In this document: positions 45,410 to 63,500 of the stretch, piece by piece
Numbering within the stretch: position 1 is the stretch's first letter
How the letters are laid out: every line of letters starts with the position of its first letter
From: Rhodosorus marinus CCMP1338
Taxonomy: Eukaryota > Plantae > Rhodophyta
Length of the DNA: 64,000 nucleotides
Direction of reading: 5' to 3'
NCBI GenBank assembly: GCA_029953675.1
Contig: JAMWBK010000006.1
Span: forward strand, 2,356,001-2,420,000
Notes under the pieces: generated by a model
Seen by the model: only the letters and a program-made list of their open reading frames with translations
The model's database searches: none
Told to the model about the DNA's origin: nothing
Made by a program: the position numbers and the translations under genes

Positions 45410-48400
45410 TTAAACCGTCACCGGCAAGCACGTGTCGCCTCGAACAACTCGTTCCCCAATTTTTGATATTTGGAAGGCCCTTTGCTCCCAATTCGCTAAA
45501 CCGTCCCCGCAGACTACATCCGCGTTAATCGCGGTTGCCCGAACCAAAGGGCCAAGGGCTCCCTCCGAAACCACCTCAATGCGGTCCGGTTTCAGAGGTC
45601 CGAAAGGGGCAATTCCAGGTTTGTTCACTCGCACTCTAACCCGATACTGTGACTGTCCTCCCGGGCTGACTACTATGTGCACGGAGTTGAACTGGCTGTC
45701 GACGACTTTGGCATCGAAGTCTGGGCCTTTTTCGCTCCAAATCACGTTTACGTGATCGTTTCCTACGTGCCTCTTTTTGAGTACCCCACTGCTCCGGTCT
45801 GTATTAGGCATCATTGTTGTGACGTGGAACACAACCTGAGTTGCACAATCAGCCCAATGGAGGCAGTACTCGCCGTCAATGTCTCTCCCGCTCGAGTCCA
45901 GTCCCCCAGTGAAAATGTTTCCAGACGTCTTTCCCAGTCGAATGAATGAACCAAGTCGGCGCAGAAATCCCAGGTAAGCATCAGATCCTGCAATGTTGTC
46001 GAGAATAGATGCTTCATCACCGTCATCTTCTCCCACATAAATGAGGCCAATCCTGTGAGTATCTTCTGCGGCCAAGCGATCCAGCATTGATAGTGCGTGG
46101 GGAACCAACTCGTCTTCTTCAGGGAGAGGAGCCGCTCCTTTGCCACCTAGGCCAAGCTGGCACAGTAGCCGCACTGGATCTCGTGGCGTCCCCGATGCAG
46201 TAGAGAGCTGCAACACGTCAGATGCAGACCCGATAGCATCTGTAAGCGTCGACATCGCCTGGTAAGCCTTTCTCAGCGCCCTCTTCTTCTTTAGCTTTGG
46301 CTGATGCGTCTTGTTTTTGGCGATAGCAAGATCCGCAAGGCTCAGTAAGCCTGATTCTTCCGAGGGCACTTGTTCTTTTGGTCGAGGACTGTCTCCTGCG
46401 GAAACCAGGTTCGCCTCTTCCTGCTGACGTGAGTCCCCGCTCAATGCACCGCCATGCCTACCCTCTACAGTATTCGATTTAAGAGTGGAGGGAACGTTGG
46501 ACGACTGCACCCAAAAGCGCGAGGTTCCCGTTGGCCGTCGCTGCACAACCTCAACCGGAGAGTCTTTGTTGAGGAGTACAGAAGGAAATTAGTAAGACTG
46601 GCAATTGGTGTTTCTGGATACCATAGCAAGGAGTTTTGAACACGGAAGTTTCCGATCCTACCTGGGCGCATATAGATGGAAACTAGATGCTGCGTCGGTT
46701 TAAGGCCAACTATGAACGTTGCCTCCTTTCCTTCGCCCGTCTGGCTTTGCCCAGGTCTTCGACGCCATGCCACTCCGAGCTTTGTTCGTTCATCCTCATG
46801 AACAAAACATCCGACGTATTCGACGCAAGCAATGGCCAGAATCTCTCCAGCAGCTGCTAACGGGTTCAAATGCTCGCTCAACAACCCTACTACAGCGCTT
46901 GGGTCCGCAACCCTAGCCCAGAGGATAAAATTTGCAAGGCAAAGGCGTCTCCAGCGCGCTGAGTTTTTTTCTTCTACTTTTGAACTCCTCTTTATCGCCG
47001 TGAGGACGCTCTTCAGACCCATTGACGCTACCTGAATTTTCAGCGGTCACCCCAATATTAATCTGGCGTTCAGACGAAGCGGTGTAAGGCTTGGCGAATT
47101 AAGAACCAACCTTGTAGTCGGCAGGAAGCGATGAAAAGTTTTTGAGACACTCAAGAATGCATAGGAGCTCGAGTTCATCAACATCGTCAGCCTGTAGACA
47201 TTCATGTATAGCTCCCAGTATTCCCTCTGCAGCAGGACCATCCAGCGGTTTTGAGCAATTGTGTGCAAACAGGTAGTTCAAAATTTCTCGAGTATCTGAA
47301 ATGGATCTCGAAGCTGCGTCCAATTCCCCTTGCAGCACGCATACAGTTTCTTGGCAAACGAGACAGCATCGTAGCATTAGTCAGTACTTCAAAGTCAATA
47401 CCGAGTTCGCAGAGGGTTTAACGAGAGCGCCTGGTATGCTAGCATCTAGTGGCATACTGTGCCTCCTCTAGCATGGCAGCAGAGGATGTCTCCATTTTAC
47501 TAACCTTCGACTTCAACATTGTACCCTGCTAGCATGTGAAGAACTGCAAGAAGCTGTCTTCTCAGATTTGGAGTCTTTGCGTACAGAACGTCGTCCCGAA
47601 CGTCACGCAGAAGCTCAGCGGCCAGCCACTCTAACTTGCAGTCCCTAACCGGGTTCGGGGAAACAAACATAGGAGAGGTTTGAAGTCGTCAATTCGTTGG
47701 GACGGAAGATAGTCTACTCTCTCGCTTCGAGAGTGTTGAGACTAGAGCAGCTGGCTTGAGGTCGCGGACCTCATTACAAACACGTTGGAAAGAAGGGCCT
47801 CTAAAGACTCGAACACTGCCGAGCTCAGTTTCTCCGAACACTCTTCCTTCAATCTTTGAGCGAAGTTGGTAATCGCGAACTGAATAGGAAAGAGGACAAT
47901 AGGCGTTGACTCGTCACCTTTCCGAGCACTGCGGAGGTGGCTGACGAGGAAGTACGAGTGCACTCCAGCAGCTATAATCCGATACTGTGAGGTGGCGGAG
48001 ATTGTGGAGACAGCATGTATTGCAATCTCCCGCGATTTCTCATTCGGGGAGTGCACGTGTACGCCAACGAGGGACTTGAAAACTGACACTGCCCTTGAGA
48101 TTGGGGTCCTCGTCATTCTCGAATACAGCAACTGAACCAGTAAGCTAGTTGCCTCACCCGCTGGAGAGTAACCTTGGCGAGCCTGTGCGTTTTTGGAGGT
48201 TAACGAATTAAGTCGTTGAGAAATCGTATTATGCCACGCTCTTACGAGGACCATATTGCGAGACTTTTTTCACCCTTTCATCAAAATGCTCCAGAATAGC
48301 TGAAAACCTCGTATCCGCAATCGGCAAATCCCGAGCAACTTCAAAGAGCAGGCTTAACTCGAGTTCCGTTGAGGGGGAAGTTTCTGCAACTAGCTCCTGG

Positions 48401-50383
48401 CCAATATACGGCAAGAGAACGTCACCCACCAAGGTATCGTCGTAAAGCCCTTTGCATGTGGCGGAATCGAAATAGGCGCGATGAGCAAACAACTGTCTCC
48501 GTCTCATCGGTGCTTTTGGAACAGTACTATCCCGCAAGCTTGCTTTGAATGTGAAACTACAAGAAGAGTCTCGAAGCAGGCTCATCTAGCCATATGCTCT
48601 GATAAAGCTCACCCTGATAAGTCACCAGAGCGTCACGAATGGTATTGAGCGTCTCTACACGAATGTTCTCCCTAGATTCCTCCTTGTAGTAAAGCGTCAT
48701 GACTTTCTGCAGTACGTCAACATAACTAACTAGTCCTCTCCAAGGCTGCGCTGAGCTTGCTCGAGCTCGCATTAACTCAAGCTGGGCATACCAGGTATAG
48801 GAAAACACTTTGTTGAGCAAACTGCACCCACTACCGAAGAACTCAGATTTGCATGGGAAGAGAGGCAGTATCGCTTACGGCTATTTCCTCAGGCAACATG
48901 TCCCTGCACTTGTCCAGGACGTTTCCAATTCTCTCGTAAGTGTAATTAGCATCCAGCGGCAGTTGAGTATCGTGCCTGAAAATTCAGTACACATCTGGTC
49001 AGCAAGGGCAGTTTCCTGCAGGCTGAGGCTGCGATCGGTACGACGGGTAGTAGGTCTCATCCACAGAAATTAGACTCCTGCAAGTAATGGCTCGAGTCCA
49101 TTCAGTTCATTTCTTCGGAGACTTACCGTTGCGACCTATCCGCCGCAAGTGACTCTACTGATGTCTGCAGATAAAACGCGGCCAGTTCTAGCGCAGTTTC
49201 CTTCAGCGTTAAGCATTTGCCTGTGTGTGGAATCAGATCTTCGAAAAGATCCAGGACGGCATCCCACTCGACATCAAGTTCCGGTCCATACTTCTTCACT
49301 AGCCTGCGAAGGCTAAGCTCAACTTCGGTAATCACGTGCGCCTCTCCACTACTTGTAGCAACTCGTAGAATGGACAGTGCAGAAGTAAGGGAAGTTTCTT
49401 TCGCGATAGCTTCTATTCGTTGATGGCTCCAAAGAGCCATCCCTATGAGATAGACAGCCCCTCGTACTAAGGCCGCATCTGTTGCATTTTTCTGCGGTGT
49501 TTTGGCTATCTTTGCGATCGAGCCGAAGAAGTAATGTCTGCAAGGAAGGGCAAGAAGCTTCTTGCAGAATGAAACAACGGCTCGTACTTGCTCATCACCT
49601 TTCGGTCCCTCGCTTGAATTCACTTCCATCGTCAACGTTGCGCACAAGATTTTGGCGAGAGCGTCAGAGTACAGAGAAAAGTGTTTCTGCAATGGCAGCA
49701 CTGCCAGGAGCTCAATGGCTAGCTTCACATTCTTTGATGACTTTGCTTCCTCAATAACCTTCAAACAAGCGCGGAAAACTTCCGCCGTTGGGGAGTTTCC
49801 CCTGAGCCGAGGATTGTGCGTCGCGATGTTTGTAGCCAAGACCAGGGCAAGGGCGATCACGTCGGGCTCAGAAGAAGTTTCCATTGTTCTCGCCAACAAA
49901 ATGAGCAACTTTGAAGTCTCAACACCCTTGACATGAAGCCCAGCATTTGTAATTAGATAGAATGCAGCGAAAAAGCGCTCATCATTCTCCAGCCCCAGTC
50001 GCAGATCCGTATCCGCATTCGACCACTCGTACAGAGCGTGCAACAATGTGGACAGCTCAGAGTCTGTGAGGATGAGCTGGAAAGATTAGCGACGACGAGT
50101 TACGCGCCGAAAACGAGAGAAAGAAACGTCGACTATAAGTCCATGTTAACCAGGCTGAACAGGACACTTCTGCAATTTAAGAGTCTCCAGCCGAGCTGCG
50201 TACCTCTGGAAGGAGCGTCTCCAGACCCTCAATTACTTTGGTCGGGTATTCGTCAGTTCTTGTTACGGCGTCGACAAGCGTGGATGCCAAAAGTTTGTCC
50301 TGTATTGTGGACCTTTCCTGAGTCCCTTCTGTACGGGGAAAACCGTCCCTTGAGTTCAAGAGAGCAGGTATTGATAGTCTCAT
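45410..50383 (-). CDS. TSC2: Tuberin/TSC2 (Rheb GAP): N-terminal HEAT/DUF3384 region plus C-terminal Rap-GAP domain, multi-exon; start approximate
   Basis: ALVRGAVYLIGMALW (tuberin N-terminal LRGAVFFVGMALW). GAP domain HRIGLIYVG, GS..Y..FL..LG, FTGGLD, VVFHVTTMMP, and Asn-thumb KKRHVGNDHV, FGPL. Confidence 0.85.
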
Positions 50384-51333: not shown

Positions 51334-54078
51334 CTAATGAGGAAGCGGGATGGCATTTGCAATCTCGCTTGACGGACTATGTTGTACAAGTCTATTGCGT
51401 TCTTCCAATCTCTGCGTCTGCTTTTCAGCAGCCTCCCACAGCGATTCGTCACAAATTGCTTTCAACTTTCTATAAAGCTTTACAAACGCTCCAGTTTCAC
51501 CTTCCTGAAACGAGACCTGCAAAAGAATGCGGAAACGGTTGAGATTCCATGTCTGGTGCTAGAAAGCAATTCAACGCGCACAATCCATCCCAACGCTCGG
51601 ATTTGTTCCACTACGTGCAATGCCTTACCGAAAGAAACGCTCTCCTAGCATTCCTCTGCATTGAAGTTTGCAGGTGAGGCCTATTCACGTTTGGTACGCT
51701 TTTCGACTCTGCCATGTTCCCAAAGGACTGCGCTCGAAGCTGCGGCACGACACCTGGAGCAGTAGTTGCAATGTGTCGCTTGTGTGGATATTGACTCAGC
51801 GTCCTCGATATGGCTGAGTTCTCGAGCACCTCGTGCGATCTTCGAAGGTCCGCCCAGCCGGAATCGCGCGCAACTGCAAATCCATCTTGCACATGCTTGT
51901 CTGTTTCAACCTCGCTCTCTTCTTCATCCGGAGTGTTTGGTCTAGTGCACAACGTTAAGAGAAACTTCAAGTCCAAGCTGGGGTGGTGGCACTTGATACA
52001 CCACATCCCCTCCACTTTGTCCGGAAGCGCGTCATTGTCTACCGCCCCGAGGTGGAAATGGGTCTTGTGCTGGTACAGAACACTCGCGATGATCATTTCC
52101 GCGAGATCAGGCCTGCGCACATAGAGTGGGTGGACTGGAATCTCCAACTTGTCGAGGACAGGAGGGTACTCATCGCCTGCACTAAACCAGGGATGTTCCA
52201 GGAGCTTTTCGAACGATGGTCGAGCGTCGGGATCGACGTTGAGCATCTTGCTCAAAAGGTTGATCGCTTCGACACTCAAGTTTAGCGGCGTTTTGTACGT
52301 CCCTAAAAGACATGCGTAGAGGGGAAAACAATTTGATCAGGTTTCAACGCTAGAATAACAGCAGTCAGTGGTTATTCCCTCTCGCACATACCGGTTACAA
52401 TGGACGTCAGCAAATCTGTACTATCCAAATCATAAAACGGCGGGTGTCCAACCAAAAGACAATACATTGACACCCCGGCACCCCAAACGTCGATCTTCCG
52501 GCCCGAATAGCACATTCCTAAAACTTGCTCCGGCGACAAGCTATATATGCTCCCTACCAAAGTGGTAGAGAACATGTCCCAGGCAGCAGTGAATACTCCG
52601 CTTTGACCAAAGTCGCCCAACTTCAGCTTAGCCTTATTGTCGAGTAGCATATTTTCCAGTCTCACATCTCTGTGGCAAATGCCGAGACTGTGACAGCACT
52701 CCAAGGTCTCGAAAAGTTGCCGCATGTAGTACCTTGCAACTTCCTCGGGGAGAAGGTTGCTGGGATAGAGCCTGACGATGTCAATCAGGGAGCCACCACC
52801 AAGGAGCTCCATTCTTAGATACATGTTTTCGTCATCTTCGAGCACTTCTTCCAGCTCAACCACGTGCGGATGACCAGTCAACATCTTAAGGGACTCGATT
52901 TCATGATCTAACCGCGACATGTAAGCACAGTTACCTAGAGGCAGCAGTGTTTAGACGATTAAGCAACGATCCAAACAGAAAATCGGCATCAACAGCTTCG
53001 TTCGAAGTCGATCATTCCGTTAGAGGAACGGCTCACCTTTCTTTACGATCTTCAGCGCGTATTTTTCATTTGTCTCCATGCTTGATGCGAATCTGACGAT
53101 TCCAGTGGCTCCTTTCCCTATGATTCTTCCGAGCTCGCAGTTCCCCACCGTATCCAGATGTCGAGATTCCCAGTACTCATACTCACGAGTAATCAGATCC
53201 GCAAGTATAATGAAGTGGTCTTGATTAAGAACACCGGAGCCAACAGTATCAAATTCGCTCATGATTCTCTCTTCAGGGGAAACTCCGGGGGGATTAGAGA
53301 ATGATAGCTCGGACAGGTGAATGTTGTCGTACTCCAAGATGCGAAACAAACAGGATAGTTCGGCTATCGTCACGTAGTTCTGTCTACCAAAGTCTGTGAC
53401 CTTCCAAAGCCACTGCATAAACTCCTCCCGTGCACCATCCTCAGAGAGAAATACTGTTAGTTCCTTGAACATTTTGAGCCGAACTCTTTCTCCCACAGCG
53501 GTTGTTTTCGCGTGCTCCGAGTACTCAACTTCTTCTGCATCGACCTCGTTTTCTGAGAGTACTTTCTCGGATTGTGCATCACTTGAGTTCCCATAAATGG
53601 CCACGGAGGGACCATTAGTCTTTTCGGATATTCCAGAATCTCGAAGCGAATGTCTCTGAATCGAATCATCCGGGACGAACACGCTGCGAACCTTCGACAA
53701 ATTTGCGAAACGACGGAACGTCGAACCGTTGCCAGTATGGGTGTCGCTGTCCGTCGTTTCCTGCTTCGTCAATTGCACACCCCTATTCAACAGCTCCTTG
53801 AATTCTGTGTCTGAAAGCTCGTCACGCAGTCTTTCTTTGGAAGTATTAAAGAAAGAATACGTGTCTGCTAGAGACTTGAAAGTGAGCGTGCCATTCTTTA
53901 GCTCGTCAAAATAAAACAGAACTGGAAGACTGTTGATGAAAGTCCAACATTTCGGCACTTTTGCAATATCCCCCAGTGACAGATACCCGTTGTTTTGTGT
54001 GTCCAACTCATTTAAAAGCCCAACAAGCTGTTCCTCGTTCTCAATGGGCAGCCAATCGCTGCTATAGCTGGCTCCCAT
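51334..54078 (-). CDS. Ser/Thr kinase of the SNF1/AMPK/CIPK-like (CAMKL) group with four N-terminal EF-hand-like motifs and a KA1-like C-terminus, ~4 exons
   Basis: MGASYS. EF-like DTQNNGYLSLGD, DELKNGTLTFKS, DFGRQNYVTIAE and DTVGSGVLNQDH. Kinase motifs IGKGATGIV, ALK, HPHVV, HRDVRLEN, DFG, SPE, DVWGAG, GHPPF and DPDARP...HPWF. The last exon reads FQEGETGAFVKLYRKL. Confidence 0.88.
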
Positions 54079-55817: not shown

Positions 55818-56810
55818 ATGCCAGGATTTCAGTCGATTTTGTTCTTCCTAGTCGTATTGTACATTGCCTTGAGTACGAATCCCGATGAGGAATCTTTCCG
55901 GAGATTTGCGGGATCCAGAATACGACGACAGGAGAAGGTTCAGTGCTCGGAGTCGGGAATCTGTGTGCATGGTGGTGGATTCTCTAGGATCTTGGAACCT
56001 TTCAACACAGACTCCAAGAAGGTGCTAGGATTTCAAGTTGCAGACGGATCTCCGCGACTCTACTTCCGTGGCACGGACTGCGTCTTTTTCACTGTGGTGC
56101 ATTGGACCAGTCCCTTGTCGGGCGCGTATCTCGGTATTCTGAATATATGGATAGCGCTTCCGCAACCGAAAGCGATTCGCGATGTGGTTGTGGTCAATCG
56201 CGATCAGTTAACGAGACTTTTGCCAGCAATAGGACTGTGGCAGGGAAGGAACGAAGAACTACCTCCGACTGAACGTGTTCTCGGAATAGTGTATACAGTT
56301 ATCTTCACGGCGCTTGCTCTCAGTTCACCCAGAGTCCGCGACGGACTCCTCTGGAGCAGGACATCAGCACGGAGAGGGCGCCTCTGGACAGCTGCCATAA
56401 GTCTTTTCGCTCATCGGACCTGGTTCTCGACCGCTCGCAGCGTGCTAGTTGTTCTCTTCTGTACATCTTCCCTAGTGGAATCAGTTGGCAAGTCCGCGTT
56501 TGTTGAGTTGCTGGGGTGCAGTGCTGTCGGTGCAATAGTGGCAACTGCAATGGCCGGCAGCGAGACCAGCCCGTTCTACCTTGGCCCGGTGACACCTTAC
56601 AGTACTCTTGTTGCCCTTTGCATGGTTGGTCTTGATTCAAGGGTGAAGATTAGATGGCTAGTGTTCTCTAACCTGTCTGTTTCACCATTTGACGCTCTGA
56701 TGGCGTCAGTAGCAGTGGAACTCATTGAAGGCAGTCTTCAGGGAGGTCTTATCGCTGCGGTAGCTGCGCTTACCTCCTGGCTGTTCGCTCGAATCGGACT
56801 TCTGCGTTAG
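55818..56810 (+). CDS. Intronless multi-pass membrane protein: N-terminal TM/TNP-motif module plus rhomboid-like fold lacking catalytic motif
   Basis: 330-aa ATG ORF. TM then TNPDEESFRRF (DUF4359-like). The C-half has rhomboid-like RGRLWTAAISLFAH and LVESVGKSAFVELL plus 5-6 hydrophobic helices. No GxSG motif. Confidence 0.65.
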   Translation: MPGFQSILFFLVVLYIALSTNPDEESFRRFAGSRIRRQEKVQCSESGICVHGGGFSRILEPFNTDSKKVLGFQVADGSPRLYFRGTDCVFFTVVHWTSPLSGAYLGILNIWIALPQPKAIRDVVVVNRDQLTRLLPAIGLWQGRNEELPPTERVLGIVYTVIFTALALSSPRVRDGLLWSRTSARRGRLWTAAISLFAHRTWFSTARSVLVVLFCTSSLVESVGKSAFVELLGCSAVGAIVATAMAGSETSPFYLGPVTPYSTLVALCMVGLDSRVKIRWLVFSNLSVSPFDALMASVAVELIEGSLQGGLIAAVAALTSWLFARIGLLR

Positions 56811-57400: not shown

Positions 57401-58425
57401 ACCTTCGTCTCCTAATGCGATAATCTAGACAACTGTCACCATCGTGCATCTTCTATGATCTACTGCGGCCCTGGAACAAGCAAAGGCATCTTGCGAAGTC
57501 AGCGTAACCACTGTTACAGACCTCAACCTCCTTTTCCGGGGAAGCATGTCTCCTAGGCTTGTAAACAGAACGACGCCAGGAAGCCGCGACTTCGCGTGCT
57601 GGGCTCTACTGTATTTTGGACTCTTCAAAATTTTGTTTTTCATTTCCCGGGGAGGAGGAAGAGACGACCTCAAACCGAAACCGCAATGTCGAAACTCCTA
57701 CAACCAAAGACACGCGTCCCTCATTCACTGGGTTAGGGACATCGTTTTTGTCTTAGGGGGTATACTCCGTCTTGAAGAATACCGTACTCTACCAAGAAAG
57801 CACTTTCGATTCCTTGATTGTTTGAGATACTGACAATATTTTGGAGGATCGTTGGGCGCATATACTGTCTTGTCAATGACAATGGGGAAGATTCGCCGAG
57901 CGTGAGATCGAGCTGCTTCGAAGACGATGGGCCGTTCATCATATTGTGGGGACAGAATCATCAAACTAGCAGAAATAGAATTTTCGGAGAAATTTCGACT
58001 CTTGCTAGCCTGGCTCAGATTTTTTCTTTGCTAGCAGGGATTGGGTGGTCGAAAGTGATAGGATTGGCCAAGAAGCAAATGAAGTTCTGCCTTATCCAAT
58101 CACTGCCAGGATACATTGGAACTCGCTCTCGAGGCGGCAGATCTTTGGATGGGGAATCGCTGAAAAACTTAATTTTTCTTCTTCGTCCTTTCTAGAGGAG
58201 GTCGACAAGCACCACTCACTACCCTTGAAATTTGTAGAATCAGAACTGTTTCTTGTGGATTTCTTTTTTGCACGTTGGATAATGGTAGCGTATCCTCAGC
58301 TGGCAGACCACCATCCTGACTGTATTATAAGTTCGCTTTAGATCTGGAGAGCGTGCAGTAGGATTGTGGGAGTAGACGTGCAGGTCGTGGGAAAGGTTTG
58401 CGTTTCTGAACTTGCCTGTGGAAAT

Positions 58426-59805
58426 ATGGAGCAAGCTGCTTTTGTGTGTGGGGGTGTTTTTGGAGCTCGTAGGAGCACTCTGTCCACCTCGGATGTAGTG
58501 TCCTCCCGCAGCGCGTTTGTCGCGCGCCGTAGCAACGTTGGAGTTGGAAAGTTCTCGTTCCAGGCGAGTCAAGCCAAGCGTTCCGGTGTGATCGTCATGG
58601 CAACGGAAACCGACACGATGGTGAAGGCCGACTCTGCCACAGGAATGCACACAGCTGCCGCAGTGAGTGCCGAAATCAGCAAGGCTATGGCCGCGAAGGG
58701 AATCGACCGACCAGTCATTATCGGTGTCGCTGCTGATTCCGGCTGTGGGAAATCCACCTTCCTGCGTCGTGTTGCGGATATTTTCGGAACCAAGCTTACG
58801 AAGGCACATACACCGCAGGGAGAGTTCCTGACGGTTATCTGCTTAGATGATTTTCATACGCACGATCGAATGGGACGTAGGGAGGCAGGTGTAACGGCCC
58901 TGGACCCAGCGGCAAACAACTTTGACCTCATGTACGAGCAGGTTAAGGCACTGAAGGAGGGAAAGTCCGTCATGAAGCCAATCTACAACCACGAGACCGG
59001 AGAAATCGACCCGCCGGAGCTGGTTGAGCCGAACCATCTAGTGGTCATCGAAGGTCTCCATCCCATTTATGATGAGCGAGTGCGCGAGCTTTTGGACTTC
59101 AGCGTCTACTTGGATCTCGCGGATGAAGTTAAGATCGCCTGGAAGATCCAGAGGGACATGGCTGAGCGAGGCCATACGCTGGAAGCTATTCTGGCTTCAA
59201 TTGAATCTCGCAAGCCCGACTTTGCGGCATACATTGACCCACAGAAGAAGCACGCTGATGTTGTTATGGAAATTCTCCCGACCGAGCTGATTCCAGATGA
59301 CGATGAGAAGAAGGTCCTTCGAGTTCGCCTCATCCAGAACGAGGGAATTGAGGGATATGAACCCGTGTTTCTTTTCGACGAAGGTTCCACGATGGAGTGG
59401 ATTCCGTGTGGAAAGAAGCTTGCTTGCAGCTATCCTGGAATCAAGTTCCGATCTGGACCTGATACTTATTATGACAAGAGTGTAAGTGCCCATCAGGAAT
59501 AGCAGCCCAGGCATTGTCGAACACCGAAAGAAGCTGATTTGACCCGTCCTCTTCTAACGTTGTAGGTCGATGTTGTAGACTGTGATGGTGGGTTTGAGAA
59601 GCTCGACGAGATGATCTACGTCGAATCTCACATGAACAATACCAGCACGAAGTTCTACGGTGAAGTTACCCAGCAACTCCTGAAGAATTCGTCCGCACCG
59701 GGAAGCAAGAATGGCACTGGTTTGTTCCAGGTCATTATGGCGCTCAAAATGCGTGAAGCTTACGAGCGAATTACTGGCAGATCTATCACCCCGGCCCTGT
59801 CGTAG
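58426..59805 (+). CDS. PRK: Phosphoribulokinase, plastid-targeted, 2 exons
   Basis: AAFV transit peptide. IIGVAADSGCGKSTF, VICLDDFH, IYNHETG, KIQRDMAERGH, WIPCGKKLACSYPG, YVESHM, NGTGLFQ. One intron gtaagt...tag at ~59482-59565. Confidence 0.97.
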
Positions 59806-60534: not shown

Positions 60535-63500
60535 TCACACATCTGTATCGTAATTGAGAATTGGCCTCAACCATTTTTCGGCCGTCCTCGTGTCCCATGA
60601 CTTTCGCTCTTGATAGTCAGTCGCCTGTTCCTTTGTAATCTGCCCGACAGCAAAATACTTGCCTACGGACACCGAGAAAACAGAACGGGGTCAGTGAACG
60701 ACGCAAGACCGTTATGAGACGAGAGACCTTGGCAATGTATCATACTATTTGGGTGAGCGAAGAGCAAGCCGCTCACGCTCGCTGGTGGGGTCATGGCCAG
60801 CGACTCCGTTAGTCCTATTCCAGCCTTGTCCGCCTCCAAGAGTTCCCACATCACGGATTTCTCCGTATGATCAGGCTGGAGTGCGGTTTGAAACCAAAGC
60901 AGGCAGGCGTTCAGGGAAAATCTTCAGTAAACCGAGGATAAGCAATTACAATTTCCTCTTCAGACAAACACCCACCTGCGAAGGATATCCTGGGGCAGGT
61001 CTAATGCCTTCATACTTAATTTTCAACAAGTCTTCTCTGTCCAGGCTTTCCTCCTTCGCATATCCCCATAAGGTTTTCCGAACCTCCTCGTGCATGTACT
61101 CCGCAAACGCTTCAGCAAGTCGATCTGCCAAAGCTTCAGTCATTATGGCTCTGTAGTCATCATTTTTCTTTTTGTAGTCCTCCACGAGCTCCTTTTTACT
61201 CGCGGACAAACAAGAACCTCCTCCATGAGCTCCAGCTCTCATACACCCCACGCCACCCAAACAAATAAGTTTGCACGGTCACATAATCCGCAATGCTCAC
61301 CTCGGCATTGATTCCAGCAGTACATGCAAACATGCCAATGTAGTCTCGAATTCCACTCTCGAGAGGCGCGACGAAATCAGACATCGCCAGGTATGGGTCG
61401 TCTGTCTCCTTCTCGCACTGCTGTCTCAACGTGTGTAGAACTCCAATTCGAGTCTGTTCGGATCTGTTCTGGTCGTCAGAGTAAACCTCAACGTCATCAC
61501 CAACAGAATTTGCGGGATAGAAAGCCACGACGCCTGGAAATTAATGAAGGTGTTGAGCAAAGATCTTCCAGTGAGCGAAATGGGTATCAGACTAAAAATA
61601 TAGTCGCATGGAGGCGTTGGCTTGCGTGCTCTAGCTTATACCGTTTGCACGCAGTAATTTTCCCTCGATGAACTCTTGCAGCATGTCTGCCGCATCCTTG
61701 TGCAGCTCCAAAGCCTGAGCACCGACATCCGGGTCCTTAAAGATCTTTGGATATCCCCGATTCGGATACTTTCCCCTAATCTGCCATGTACTGAAGAAAG
61801 GGTTCCAGTCTATGTACGGAACCAACAGCTCCAACGGCAGCTCCAGTACTTCTCTCCTTCCGATGAAAGAAGGTTTCACCGCTGGTGGTCTTGTGAGGAA
61901 GTCTATCTCAAACTTGTTCTCGCGTGCTTCCGAAAGCGATAGGAACTTTCTCTCTTCCAGGCCTGCATAATGCTCCTGTGCAACAAGCGACGGATAATAT
62001 GGCAGAAGGAATATTCAGACACCCAGAAAACACAACGTTTTAGGGGAGGTCGGACGAAAATTCAGAATTGCAAGGTTTACTTCTCGAAGTTCTTCGTATT
62101 CTTCATCAACGTCAGCAACAAAGTCTTCAGTATTCTTCTCATCCAACAGGCTCGAAACGACCGGCACACTTCGCGACGCGTCCAATACGTGCACAACTGG
62201 GCCACTGTAGGCTGGTCTGATCTTCACAGCAGTATGCATCTTTGAAGTTGTCGCTCCGCCAATTAATAGGGGAATCCTTAGCCTGGTTTTCTCCAACTTC
62301 TTAGCCATGAAAACCATTTCGTCTAGTGACGGAGTGATTAGGCCGGACAATCCGACAACGTCGGCATTATTCTCTATGCACGCTTCAATAATCTTATCGG
62401 GCGGACACATGACCCCGAGATCTATGACTCGGTAGTTATTGCAGCCCAGCACAACTCCGACTATGTTCTTCCCAATATCGTGAACGTCGCCCTTGACCGT
62501 TGCAATAACAAACGTTCCAGCGTACATATCTGTTTCTTCCGCTGCCAAGCCAGCTTCCAAAGCCTTTCGCCTCGCCTCCTCCTTCTCAATTTCCATGTAT
62601 GGAACCAATACTGCCACTGCCTTCTTCATAACTCGGGCGCTTTTGATCACTTGAGGTAGAAACATCTTTCCCGCTCCGAACAAGTCTCCAACAACGTTCA
62701 TACCGTCCATTAAGGGGCCTTCAATGACTTCGAGAGGCCTTGCATATTTTTGTCTGGCTTCTTCCGTGTCTTGCTCCACAAACTCATCGAGTCCTTTCAC
62801 GAGAGAGTGTGTCAAACGCTCCTGAACCGGAGCTTCTCTCCACTTCGACTTTTCCTTATCCTCCTTCCTCCCTTGAGAGCACAAACGGCAGTAAAGCGGT
62901 TGTGAACGAACGCTTTCACTAAGCTTCTAAAACATAGTTCCCTAGCAAACTGTCATGGCAATGTGCTCACCTTCTTTAGTCATAGTCAGTGAGTAGTTGA
63001 GAAGCTTTTCCGTGGCTTCTTCATGTCGATTCAGCAGAACATCTTCAATCAATTTCAGCAACTCCTTATCGATGTCATCATAGTTGGGAATCAGTCCAGC
63101 ATTGACGATACCCATATCCAGACCCTTGTCTATTCCGTAGACAAGGAAAGCCGAATGCATGGCTTCTCGGAGAGTAGAATTCCCCCTGAAGGAGAAAGAG
63201 ACGTTGGAGACTCCGCCAGAAACGTGGCATCCGGGCAACGTGTCTCTAATGATTCTCGAGGCTTCGAAGAAATTAACCGCGTAGTTGTTGTGCTCTTCAA
63301 TGCCAGTGGCGACAGTCAAGATGTTTGGATCAAATATAATATCCGTCGGGGCAAAATTCACTATGTCGACCAGTATTTTGTACGCCCTGGTGCATATGCG
63401 AACCTAAGATCAAGCGGACAGTACAGGTCAGAGTAACCGGTGAACCACCTGAAGGTCCCGGGCCCAAGTATCACAAGCGCCGTCGAATAGAACATTGAAG

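Follow-up and report, generated by a model that had tools for sequence, protein, structure and literature searches.

Does a single gene of the red alga Rhodosorus marinus CCMP1338 join a lipid-anchored calcium sensor to a protein kinase and, if so, to which kinase family does it belong and can the sensor still sense Ca2+? The question is raised by a gene on the minus strand of a 64,000-nucleotide (nt) stretch of contig JAMWBK010000006.1 (GenBank assembly GCA_029953675.1, positions 2,356,001 to 2,420,000), which as a whole constitutes the window analyzed here; all coordinates below are window positions and, unless marked otherwise, refer to the minus strand. A first-pass annotation, made from the letters alone, had described at 51334-54078 a myristoylated EF-hand sensor fused N-terminally to a SNF1/CIPK-like kinase, that is, a CBL-CIPK-like module in one chain. 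These coordinates proved exact, and the one-chain order of an MGxxxS-type start, EF-hands, kinase and KA1-like tail is present in the open reading frame (ORF). We favor, with moderate confidence, the view that the protein is the Rhodosorus member of an ancient kinase family, the clade designated OG040 in a published kinome tree, in which a Met-Gly signal, a calcineurin-B/NCS-like EF-hand module, a conserved helix, a Ser/Thr kinase and a KA1-like domain are joined and would act by the mechanism outlined below. The gene structure, domain order, family membership and taxonomic spread were established as follows.

The coding sequence (51334-54078; stop codon 51334-51336), read and translated from the window, comprises four exons and 2442 nt encoding 813 amino acids (aa), with no earlier start codon between its ATG (54078) and an in-frame stop upstream. 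Exon 1 (53037-54078; aa 1-347 plus 1 nt) contains the EF-hand region in full and the beginning of the kinase N-lobe, and exon 2 (52392-52934) the kinase core, with HRDVRLEN (aa 435-442), DFG (aa 455-457) and the activation loop to SPE. Exon 3 (51629-52302) encodes the end of the kinase C-lobe, the first part of the KA1-like domain and a disordered insert, and exon 4 (51334-51516) the remainder of that domain (its last strand and helix), the C-terminal tail and the stop. All three introns have GT..AG boundaries: intron 1 (52935-53036; 102 nt, GTGAGC...CTCTAG, phase 1), intron 2 (52303-52391; 89 nt, GTATGT...TTTTAG, phase 1) and intron 3 (51517-51628; 112 nt, GTAAGG...TTGCAG, phase 0). The best database match, a transcript-derived protein of Rhodosorus marinus MMETSP0011 (P0001; 95% identity over aligned residues), spans the entire gene model and all three splice junctions, across which it reads KIVKKGNCAYMSRLDHE, IVTGTYKTPLN and RRAFLSVSFQEGETG, respectively. 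It therefore also reads through the junction at 53.0-52.9 kb, which had been supposed to join the EF-hand half to the kinase half; instead, exon 1 alone already holds the start of the kinase. The four EF-hand loops lie in one uninterrupted ORF (54078-53020) with GKGATG (the Gly-rich loop, aa 321-326) and the lysine of the VAIK type (Lys343, in ALKIVKK, aa 341-347). Because exon 1 already carries the Gly-rich loop and this lysine, the fusion is independent of the splicing evidence, and the EF-hand region and the kinase certainly belong to one gene.

The protein begins MGASYS (54061-54078), an N-myristoylation-type start that can be read directly, with the initiator Met, Gly2 and a small uncharged residue (Ser6) all in place as first noted. 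Met1 and Gly2 are invariant in 24 complete red-algal ortholog N-termini, and the Met-Gly start is present in most distant members of the family; at the level of the sequence the protein thus has what N-myristoylation requires, with the attachment of the lipid itself being predicted. The start is followed by EF-hand pair 1 (aa 15-87; 53818-54036), with its loops at 53968-54003 (EF1) and 53872-53907 (EF2), a disordered polar linker (aa 112-182; 53533-53745; predicted local distance difference test score, pLDDT, <50) and a long helix with EF-hand pair 2 (aa 188-301; 53176-53517), with its loops at 53359-53394 (EF3) and 53215-53250 (EF4). The helix leaving EF4 (aa 286-308, ...ADLITREYEYWESRHL; 53155-53223) enters the kinase directly, with helices predicted at aa 286-301 and 303-308. 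The polar linker of ~120 aa first estimated between two EF-hand-like pairs is a fair description, given about 70 aa of disorder in the AlphaFold2 model and an EF2-to-EF3 loop spacing of 159 aa.

Several comparisons point to an EF-hand fold for this region. An AlphaFold2 model of aa 1-311, built with 24 orthologs, shows four helix-loop-helix units (mean pLDDT 75, predicted template modelling score, pTM, 0.70; confident over aa 8-111 and 183-307), and its top Foldseek matches in the PDB are all EF-hand sensors (GCAP1, calcineurin B, NCS-1, KChIP1, CIB1 and hippocalcin). In Pfam searches of the window protein, EF-hand_7 matches at aa 219-290 with a borderline 30.7 bits (cut-off 30) and EF-hand_6 at aa 21-41 with 18.8 bits, under its cut-off, whereas orthologs and distant members score 33-63 bits; the helix-loop-helix pairs are thus recognized in the Rhodosorus protein and its relatives alike, borderline in the former and clearly in the latter. 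With the N-terminal region of the window protein, phmmer matched only calcineurin B in the PDB (E 0.099), and a family profile of the EF-hand region (17 sequences, linker removed) matched 406 PDB EF-hand chains at E<=0.01. Calcineurin B ranked first in that search (6e-14 to 4e-10), followed by ALG-2, the calmodulin-like domain of CDPK and hippocalcin/NCS, and no CBL chain appeared among the top 60 PDB matches. By these comparisons, the sensor region is nearest to calcineurin B and NCS-type four-EF-hand proteins.

The kinase domain (aa 316-568; 52184-53133, spanning introns 1 and 2; Pfam Pkinase E 5e-56) is followed by a conserved tail that we consider likely, though not proven, to be a KA1 domain. 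Its N-terminal part (aa 575-660; 51908-52165) forms a strand, a helix and three strands, and its C-terminal part (aa 748-798; 51382-51646, spanning intron 3) a strand, FLSVSFQEGETG, and a long helix. Between the two lies a disordered insert (~aa 661-747; 51647-51907) that is highly variable in length in the orthologs and nearly absent from compact members of the family. In other words, the AlphaFold2 model of the tail (aa 565-813) has the order strand, helix, four strands, helix, with the insert preceding the last strand and pLDDT 80-96 outside the insert. Among red-algal orthologs the last strand and helix of this split domain read FQPFIEVRLxxGESGLFLKICRKLK. A tail profile that includes compact non-red-algal members gave, against 177,635 PDB sequences, the KA1 domains of Chk1 (5wi2_A) and BRSK2 (4yom_A) as its top two matches (E 0.0068 each), with the BRSK1 KA1 and the SOS2/CIPK24 regulatory domain at lower rank. 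Further, in an hhalign comparison with aligned KA1 domains from MARK1/3 and fungal Gin4/Hsl1, the final two strands and helix of the tail matched in register (E 9.7e-4, probability 22%). The KA1-like tail of the first-pass annotation has moderate support, from the order of elements and the top profile matches, and no Pfam match. Two side observations concern the tail. One member, P0035 (L001, a Logan ERR1711963 contig of 1738 nt), is a 482-aa short form consisting only of EF-hand pair 2, the kinase and a compact, insert-free tail; its tail alone in the family gives a marginal match to Pfam Fungal_KA1 (E 0.0095-0.11). Separately, the red-algal insert contains a conserved motif (xHPSKxxSP in most orthologs; YPHKR in the window, within SQYPHKR, aa 709-715, ~51742-51762) that may be a docking or phosphorylation site, and tail position 137 is a nearly invariant Pro.

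The same domain order recurs in about 35 full-length red-algal relatives (E 1e-176 to 1e-82; Florideophyceae, Bangiophyceae, Porphyridiophyceae and Compsopogonophyceae), after which there is a sharp drop to kinase-only matches; a phmmer search with the N-terminal 311 aa of the window protein against 1.84 billion representative proteins returned 53 matches at E<=0.001. Most of the red-algal orthologs have canonical EF2 and EF3 loops (Pfam EF-hand scores 34-56 bits). Outside the kinase, conservation in the family is highest in the EF4 exit helix that leads into it (ADLVTREYEFWENRHL), where six residues (T297, E299, Y300, W303, R306 and H307) are invariant. The red-algal linkers share the motif F-R-R-F-S-S-Y-S-N-V-R-S-V-F, which in the window (FRRFANLSKVRSVF, aa 121-134; 53677-53718) begins FRRFANLSKV, with Asn in place of the acceptor Ser.

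The architecture had been proposed to be one of red algae, a scope that is too narrow. Outside this group, the order Met-Gly, EF-hand pair 1, linker, EF-hand pair 2, kinase and compact tail is found in Gloeochaete wittrockiana (glaucophyte), Rhodelphis marinus, Palpitomonas bilix (Cryptista), Acrasis kona (Heterolobosea), Gefionella okellyi (malawimonad), Mastigella eilhardi (Archamoebae) and an unclassified eukaryote, and Galdieria yellowstonensis is a further source; the compact tails share the signature LKCxxPxxxLKF...LxFxLxEGESxxF. The sequence of the jakobid Andalucia godoyi (P0144) matches Pfam in its kinase only, with EF-hand pair 2 and the tail motif read by eye. A full-architecture member is also filed under the locust Schistocerca gregaria (P0155, XP_049848742.1, 115-kb contig) and may come from a contaminant or symbiont, because the other sources of the family are protists and algae. 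Two distant members could have an additional domain: P0157 shows a phosphatase-like insert between its EF-hand pairs (aa 391-499; DSPc 30.8 bits, cut-off 33.5), and P0142, with no DSPc match at E<=0.001, has a CHARSGAGR-type motif seen by eye at the same place, so that their layout would be EF-hand pair, dual-specificity phosphatase, EF-hand pair, kinase.

The kinase clade itself had been delineated before. In the 2020 eukaryotic kinome tree of van Wijk and Snel (bioRxiv 10.1101/2020.01.27.920793), OG040 is an unnamed CAMK clade traced to the last eukaryotic common ancestor (LECA). That preprint is the sole publication we found that lists the clade, and it calls the retention pattern and function a matter of curiosity. 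A family-motif search of the supplement of that preprint recovered PPUR008001, GSUL004803, NGRU000218, CPAR020371 and COWC002949. The first of these is identical, in every column kept in the trimmed kinase-domain alignment of the supplement, to the Porphyridium ortholog found here (P0032, which matches the window protein at E 2.9e-148), and GSUL004803 is nearly identical to the Galdieria ortholog (P0125). In the tree file of the preprint, the five sequences and ACAS000767 fall in the OG040 clade with a bootstrap of 99; the clade includes Galdieria, Naegleria, Cyanophora, Capsaspora and Acanthamoeba sequences and is separate from OG045 (CHK1/CIPK), OG046 (MARK2), OG047 (AMPKA2) and OG048 (BRSK1). 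Based on this published tree and the score gaps given below, the Rhodosorus kinase is best assigned to OG040. The preprint deals with kinase domains only and provides no name, function or domain architecture for the clade, and its main text contains zero mentions of EF-hand, KA1 or myristoyl; because it is silent on domain architecture, the architecture found here is an addition to OG040. We also found no published description of a myristoyl signal, EF-hands, a kinase and a KA1-like tail in one protein in the literature that combines EF-hands with red algae, BRSK or KA1. The clade is already delineated, and its conserved domain architecture is undescribed in that literature, which gives no support to the concern, raised at the outset, that the architecture might already be a described family.

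How could such a protein work? The mechanism that we propose is modelled on the known behaviour of the component domains. The myristoyl group and the KA1-like domain would tether the kinase at an acidic membrane, possibly with a Ca2+-myristoyl switch in the style of NCS proteins instead of plain myristoyl anchoring. KA1 domains bind acidic lipids and autoinhibit the kinase in MARK, BRSK and Chk1, and the KA1-like domain here may hold its kinase autoinhibited too. The red-algal linker motif F-R-R-F-S-S-Y-S-N-V may add to this autoinhibition: it fits the AMPK/MARK-type substrate consensus (hydrophobic at -5 and +4, basic at -4/-3), and the Rhodosorus linker, with Asn for the phospho-acceptor Ser, would be a pseudosubstrate, not a substrate. 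Binding of Ca2+ to the EF-hand module would then be signalled through the rigid helix between EF4 and the kinase and relieve the inhibition. The conserved Thr/Ser of the activation loop would probably be phosphorylated by an LKB1- or CaMKK-type upstream kinase, and LKB1 is retained in red algae (preprint 10.1101/2020.01.27.920793).

A number of points weigh against this reading. The Foldseek matches of the N-terminal model have E values of about 0.02, with none at <=0.001 and low template modelling (TM) scores. Neither KA1 nor any other Pfam family matched the tail, whether searched within the window protein or as an isolated 250-aa sequence. When the tail model was compared with the PDB by Foldseek, no match reached significance (best E 3.3; KA1 E 7.8), the best target-normalised TM-score being 0.48 to the BRSK2/SAD KA1 chain 4yom_A; the ~80-residue disordered insert probably breaks this alignment. 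When the tail profile was built from red algae only, without the insert, it found no KA1 match in the PDB (hhalign probability 0.4%), and the support for KA1 stays below threshold in each single test (Pfam, Foldseek and the 22% of hhalign). The FRRF linker motif is not conserved outside red algae, and the pseudosubstrate idea is drawn solely from a match to the AMPK/MARK-type consensus. We found no biochemical data on any family member, and the sole N-terminal EF-hand kinase tested earlier, PITG_08008 of Phytophthora infestans, did not bind 45Ca (PMC3019232). Finally, the loops of the Rhodosorus protein are themselves a difficulty, since a full ligand set exists in EF1 only, with Asp and not Glu at position 12, and EF2 and EF4 fail at both positions 3 and 12.

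Specifically, the EF1 loop (aa 26-37, DTQNNGYLSLGD) has Gln at position 3 and Asp at 12 and retains oxygen ligands at 1, 3, 5 and 12; the EF2 loop (aa 58-69, DELKNGTLTFKS) has Leu at 3 and Ser at 12; the EF3 loop (aa 229-240, DFGRQNYVTIAE) has Gly at 3, Asn at 6 and Glu at 12, and hence no position-3 ligand; and the EF4 loop (aa 277-288, DTVGSGVLNQDH) has Val at 3 and His at 12. The missing position-12 Glu of EF2 and EF4 had already been recognized. Judging by these residues, EF2 and EF4 appear dead, EF3 weakened, and EF1 alone looks competent with its Asp12; an Asp at position 12 is compatible with the binding of Ca2+ or Mg2+ by an EF-hand. Because three of the four loops are degenerate, Ca2+ sensing by the Rhodosorus copy is uncertain, its Ca2+ dependence is probably low or altered, and the description of this copy as a Ca2+-sensing kinase goes further than its loops support.

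Alternatively, the EF-hand module of Rhodosorus might no longer sense Ca2+ at all and persist as a pseudo-EF-hand scaffold, structural or regulatory, with the kinase controlled solely by activation-loop phosphorylation (LKB1- or CaMKK-type), lipid binding and autoinhibition by the KA1-like domain or the linker. This alternative, which we regard as unlikely though far from negligible, would account for the substitutions just listed in all four loops and for Pfam EF-hand scores that lie at or under their cut-offs in the window protein. It also fits the N-terminal fragment of a close relative (P0121), in which EF1 and EF2 show similar degeneration, the negative 45Ca result for PITG_08008, whose EF-hands are likewise weak, and the P0001 transcript, which lacks part of EF3 and EF4. 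That is, P0001 is without 30 aa (aa 246-276; 53251-53343), with YDNIHLSELSFSNPPGVSPEERIMSEFDTVGS replaced by L, a gap that takes out the exit helix of EF3 together with the entry helix and loop start of EF4 and argues for relaxed constraint on EF-hand pair 2 in the Rhodosorus lineage, counting further against our reading as far as this copy is concerned. On the other hand, the fold of both EF-hand pairs is still confidently predicted, the hydrophobic core and the helix positions are those conserved in canonical-loop orthologs, and EF1 keeps its four oxygen ligands. As for the origin of the P0001 gap, no GT..AG intron explaining it was found at 53251-53343, and an alternative donor/acceptor pair was rejected, as it would yield a different peptide; the gap may be a strain difference or deletion, a non-canonical splice or other event, or an assembly artefact.

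We find it very improbable that the gene is instead an ordinary CIPK/SnRK3, SnRK1/AMPK or BRSK ortholog working with separate partner subunits. The idea is suggested by the database names of the relatives ('CBL-interacting protein kinase 31', 'SnRK', 'KIN10' and 'BRSK2'), by the best PDB matches of the kinase, which are CAMKL members (Hsl1, BRSK2, SIK3, SNRK, MARK, CIPK23, Snf1 and AMPK), and by the KA1-like tail, a feature shared with BRSK, MARK and the PPI domain of CIPK. However, NAF (PF03822), UBA and the AMPK C-terminal domain gave no Pfam match even at E<=10, either in the full protein or in the 250-aa tail, and the kinase domain of the window alone scores 193-348 bits against the family, as opposed to 139-157 bits against Gin4/Hsl1/CIPK and <=170 bits against the best PDB CAMKL members (single outsiders include a poplar CIPK, 139 bits, and BRSK2, 164 bits). 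Moreover, the orthologs fall in their own clade (OG040, bootstrap 99), and CBL and CIPK have been reported absent from Rhodophyta (PMC4990929). We therefore dropped this alternative on the combined grounds of the domain absences, the score gap and the published tree, and with it the label SNF1/CIPK-like: the protein is not a CIPK/SnRK3 (no PF03822 match at E<=10; orthologs in OG040, not in OG045), nor an AMPK/SNF1/SnRK1 alpha subunit (no UBA/AID or C-terminal domain match; the AMPK clade is OG047). Membership of CDPK/CCaMK fails on the order of domains, since all four EF-hand loops (aa 26-288) are N-terminal to the kinase (aa 316-568).

The kinase also apparently remains active, and the chance that it is a catalytically inactive pseudokinase scaffold seems slimmer still. 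The suspicion would stem from its catalytic loop (HRDVRLEN, aa 435-442; 52657-52680), in which Arg replaces the usual Lys two residues past the HRD Asp, but the change is conservative and family-wide (HRDLRLEN in distant members), and Src-type tyrosine kinases, with HRDLRAAN, likewise have Arg there. The rest of the catalytic set is intact (the Gly-rich loop, Lys343, a candidate alpha-C Glu in LDHEIESL, the HRD Asp437, Asn442, DFG and SPE), and the pseudokinase reading was dropped with these motifs complete. As a side observation, the Arg may account for the name 'calcium-dependent tyrosine protein kinase' given to the Gracilaria domingensis homolog, while the GS...SPE P+1 region still resembles that of a Ser/Thr kinase. 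Last, that the fusion is a gene-model artefact of a separate EF-hand ORF and kinase gene is next to impossible and was dropped as refuted by the contiguous ORF (54078-53020), which runs without interruption through all four EF-hand loops and on past the Gly-rich loop and the VAIK lysine: the transcript-derived P0001 covers the entire model, >60 homologs across many lineages share the domain order, and no point in favor of separate genes was found.

Placed beside known systems, the OG040 protein of Rhodosorus resembles several of them in part. The CBL-CIPK (SOS3-SOS2) system also has an acylated, calcineurin B-related four-EF-hand sensor that regulates a CAMK-group kinase with a KA1-like PPI domain, and this regulatory domain of CIPK has a KA1-like fold that may bind membranes (PMC3634423). 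Unlike CBL-CIPK, which consists of two proteins, the Rhodosorus protein is one chain with the sensor N-terminal, no NAF/FISL match and a kinase of another clade. The functional analogy is thus a reasonable one, given the calcineurin-B-type sensor and the KA1-like tail, and it is this part of the CBL-CIPK-like module first proposed that holds, whereas membership of the kinase in that group (no NAF; OG040) does not. CDPKs and CCaMKs likewise carry EF-hands and a kinase on a single chain, and many CDPKs are N-myristoylated. Their EF-hands are C-terminal to the kinase, however, and their kinases belong to a different clade, so the order here is reversed, as had been noted from the start; in addition, the Rhodosorus EF-hand module is split by a long linker, lacks the kinase-EF junction (autoinhibitory helix) and is accompanied by a KA1-like tail. 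BRSK/SAD, MARK/PAR-1, Hsl1/Gin4/Kcc4 and Chk1 are CAMK-group kinases with a C-terminal KA1 and provide the best PDB matches for both the kinase and the tail profile; these families have no EF-hands, whereas the Rhodosorus protein has no UBA, a KA1 likeness that is sub-threshold and the large red-algal insert. The sensors of the NCS, GCAP and calcineurin B type resemble the EF-hand module in the N-terminal Met-Gly, in a compact two-lobe arrangement (model pTM 0.70) and as top structure and profile matches, but they are free-standing proteins of ~170-200 aa, whereas the lobes in the OG040 family are split by 70-400 aa of disordered linker and joined to a kinase.

EF-hands N-terminal to a kinase are not without precedent. 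PITG_08008, which combines EF-hands, a PH domain and a kinase, was reported in 2010 as new for any eukaryotic protein kinase (PMC3019232), and it shares with the Rhodosorus protein the position of EF-hands ahead of a CAMK-group kinase. It differs in that its EF-hands and kinase are separated by the PH domain, in having no reported KA1, in an oomycete-specific distribution and in the negative 45Ca result (PMC3019232). The published OG040 clade shows the same patchy distribution as the family found here, with members from red algae and a glaucophyte as well as from excavates, amoebae and Capsaspora. It is intriguing to hypothesize, although we hold it to be less likely than not, that the whole architecture dates to the LECA and that OG040 represents a third type of Ca2+-decoding kinase, built as a single chain, beside CaM-CaMK/CDPK and CBL-CIPK. 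Such a kinase would respond jointly to Ca2+ and membrane lipid; its surviving members would be those of red algae, glaucophytes, Rhodelphis, cryptists, Discoba, malawimonads, Amoebozoa and Capsaspora, and it may replace CBL-CIPK in lineages where the latter is missing, such as red algae.

Ca2+ decoding in red algae is poorly known, with CBL-CIPK reported absent (PMC4990929), and the Rhodosorus gene offers a concrete candidate. For OG040, the gain is a domain architecture, and with it hypotheses that can be tested. If the EF-hand module is functional in the orthologs with canonical loops, the family would represent an independent, ancient coupling of a myristoylated Ca2+ sensor to a kinase, and could inform the origins of both the two-component (CBL-CIPK) and the fused (CDPK) systems. 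The practical value is modest: misleading names are corrected (CIPK31, SnRK, KIN10, BRSK2, AMPK alpha-1 and 'tyrosine kinase'), and species amenable to experiment are pointed out, among them Porphyridium, Galdieria, Acanthamoeba, Naegleria and Capsaspora.

Regarding the neighbourhood of the gene, the window also contains a 330-aa hydrophobic ORF without a Pfam match (55818-56810, +), a phosphoribulokinase/uridine-kinase gene (58366-59502, +; 248 bits) and a methionine-synthase-like ORF with two B12-binding domains (62015-62884, -). Directly downstream of the kinase gene, on the same strand, lies a tuberin/TSC2-like gene (45410-50046, -), in which an ORF at 49123-50046 matches DUF3384 (35 bits), which we take to be the tuberin N-terminal region, and an ORF at 45410-46546 matches Rap_GAP (157 bits). 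AMPK phosphorylates TSC2 in animals, and a TSC2 homolog adjoining a CAMK-group kinase makes for a curious neighbourhood.

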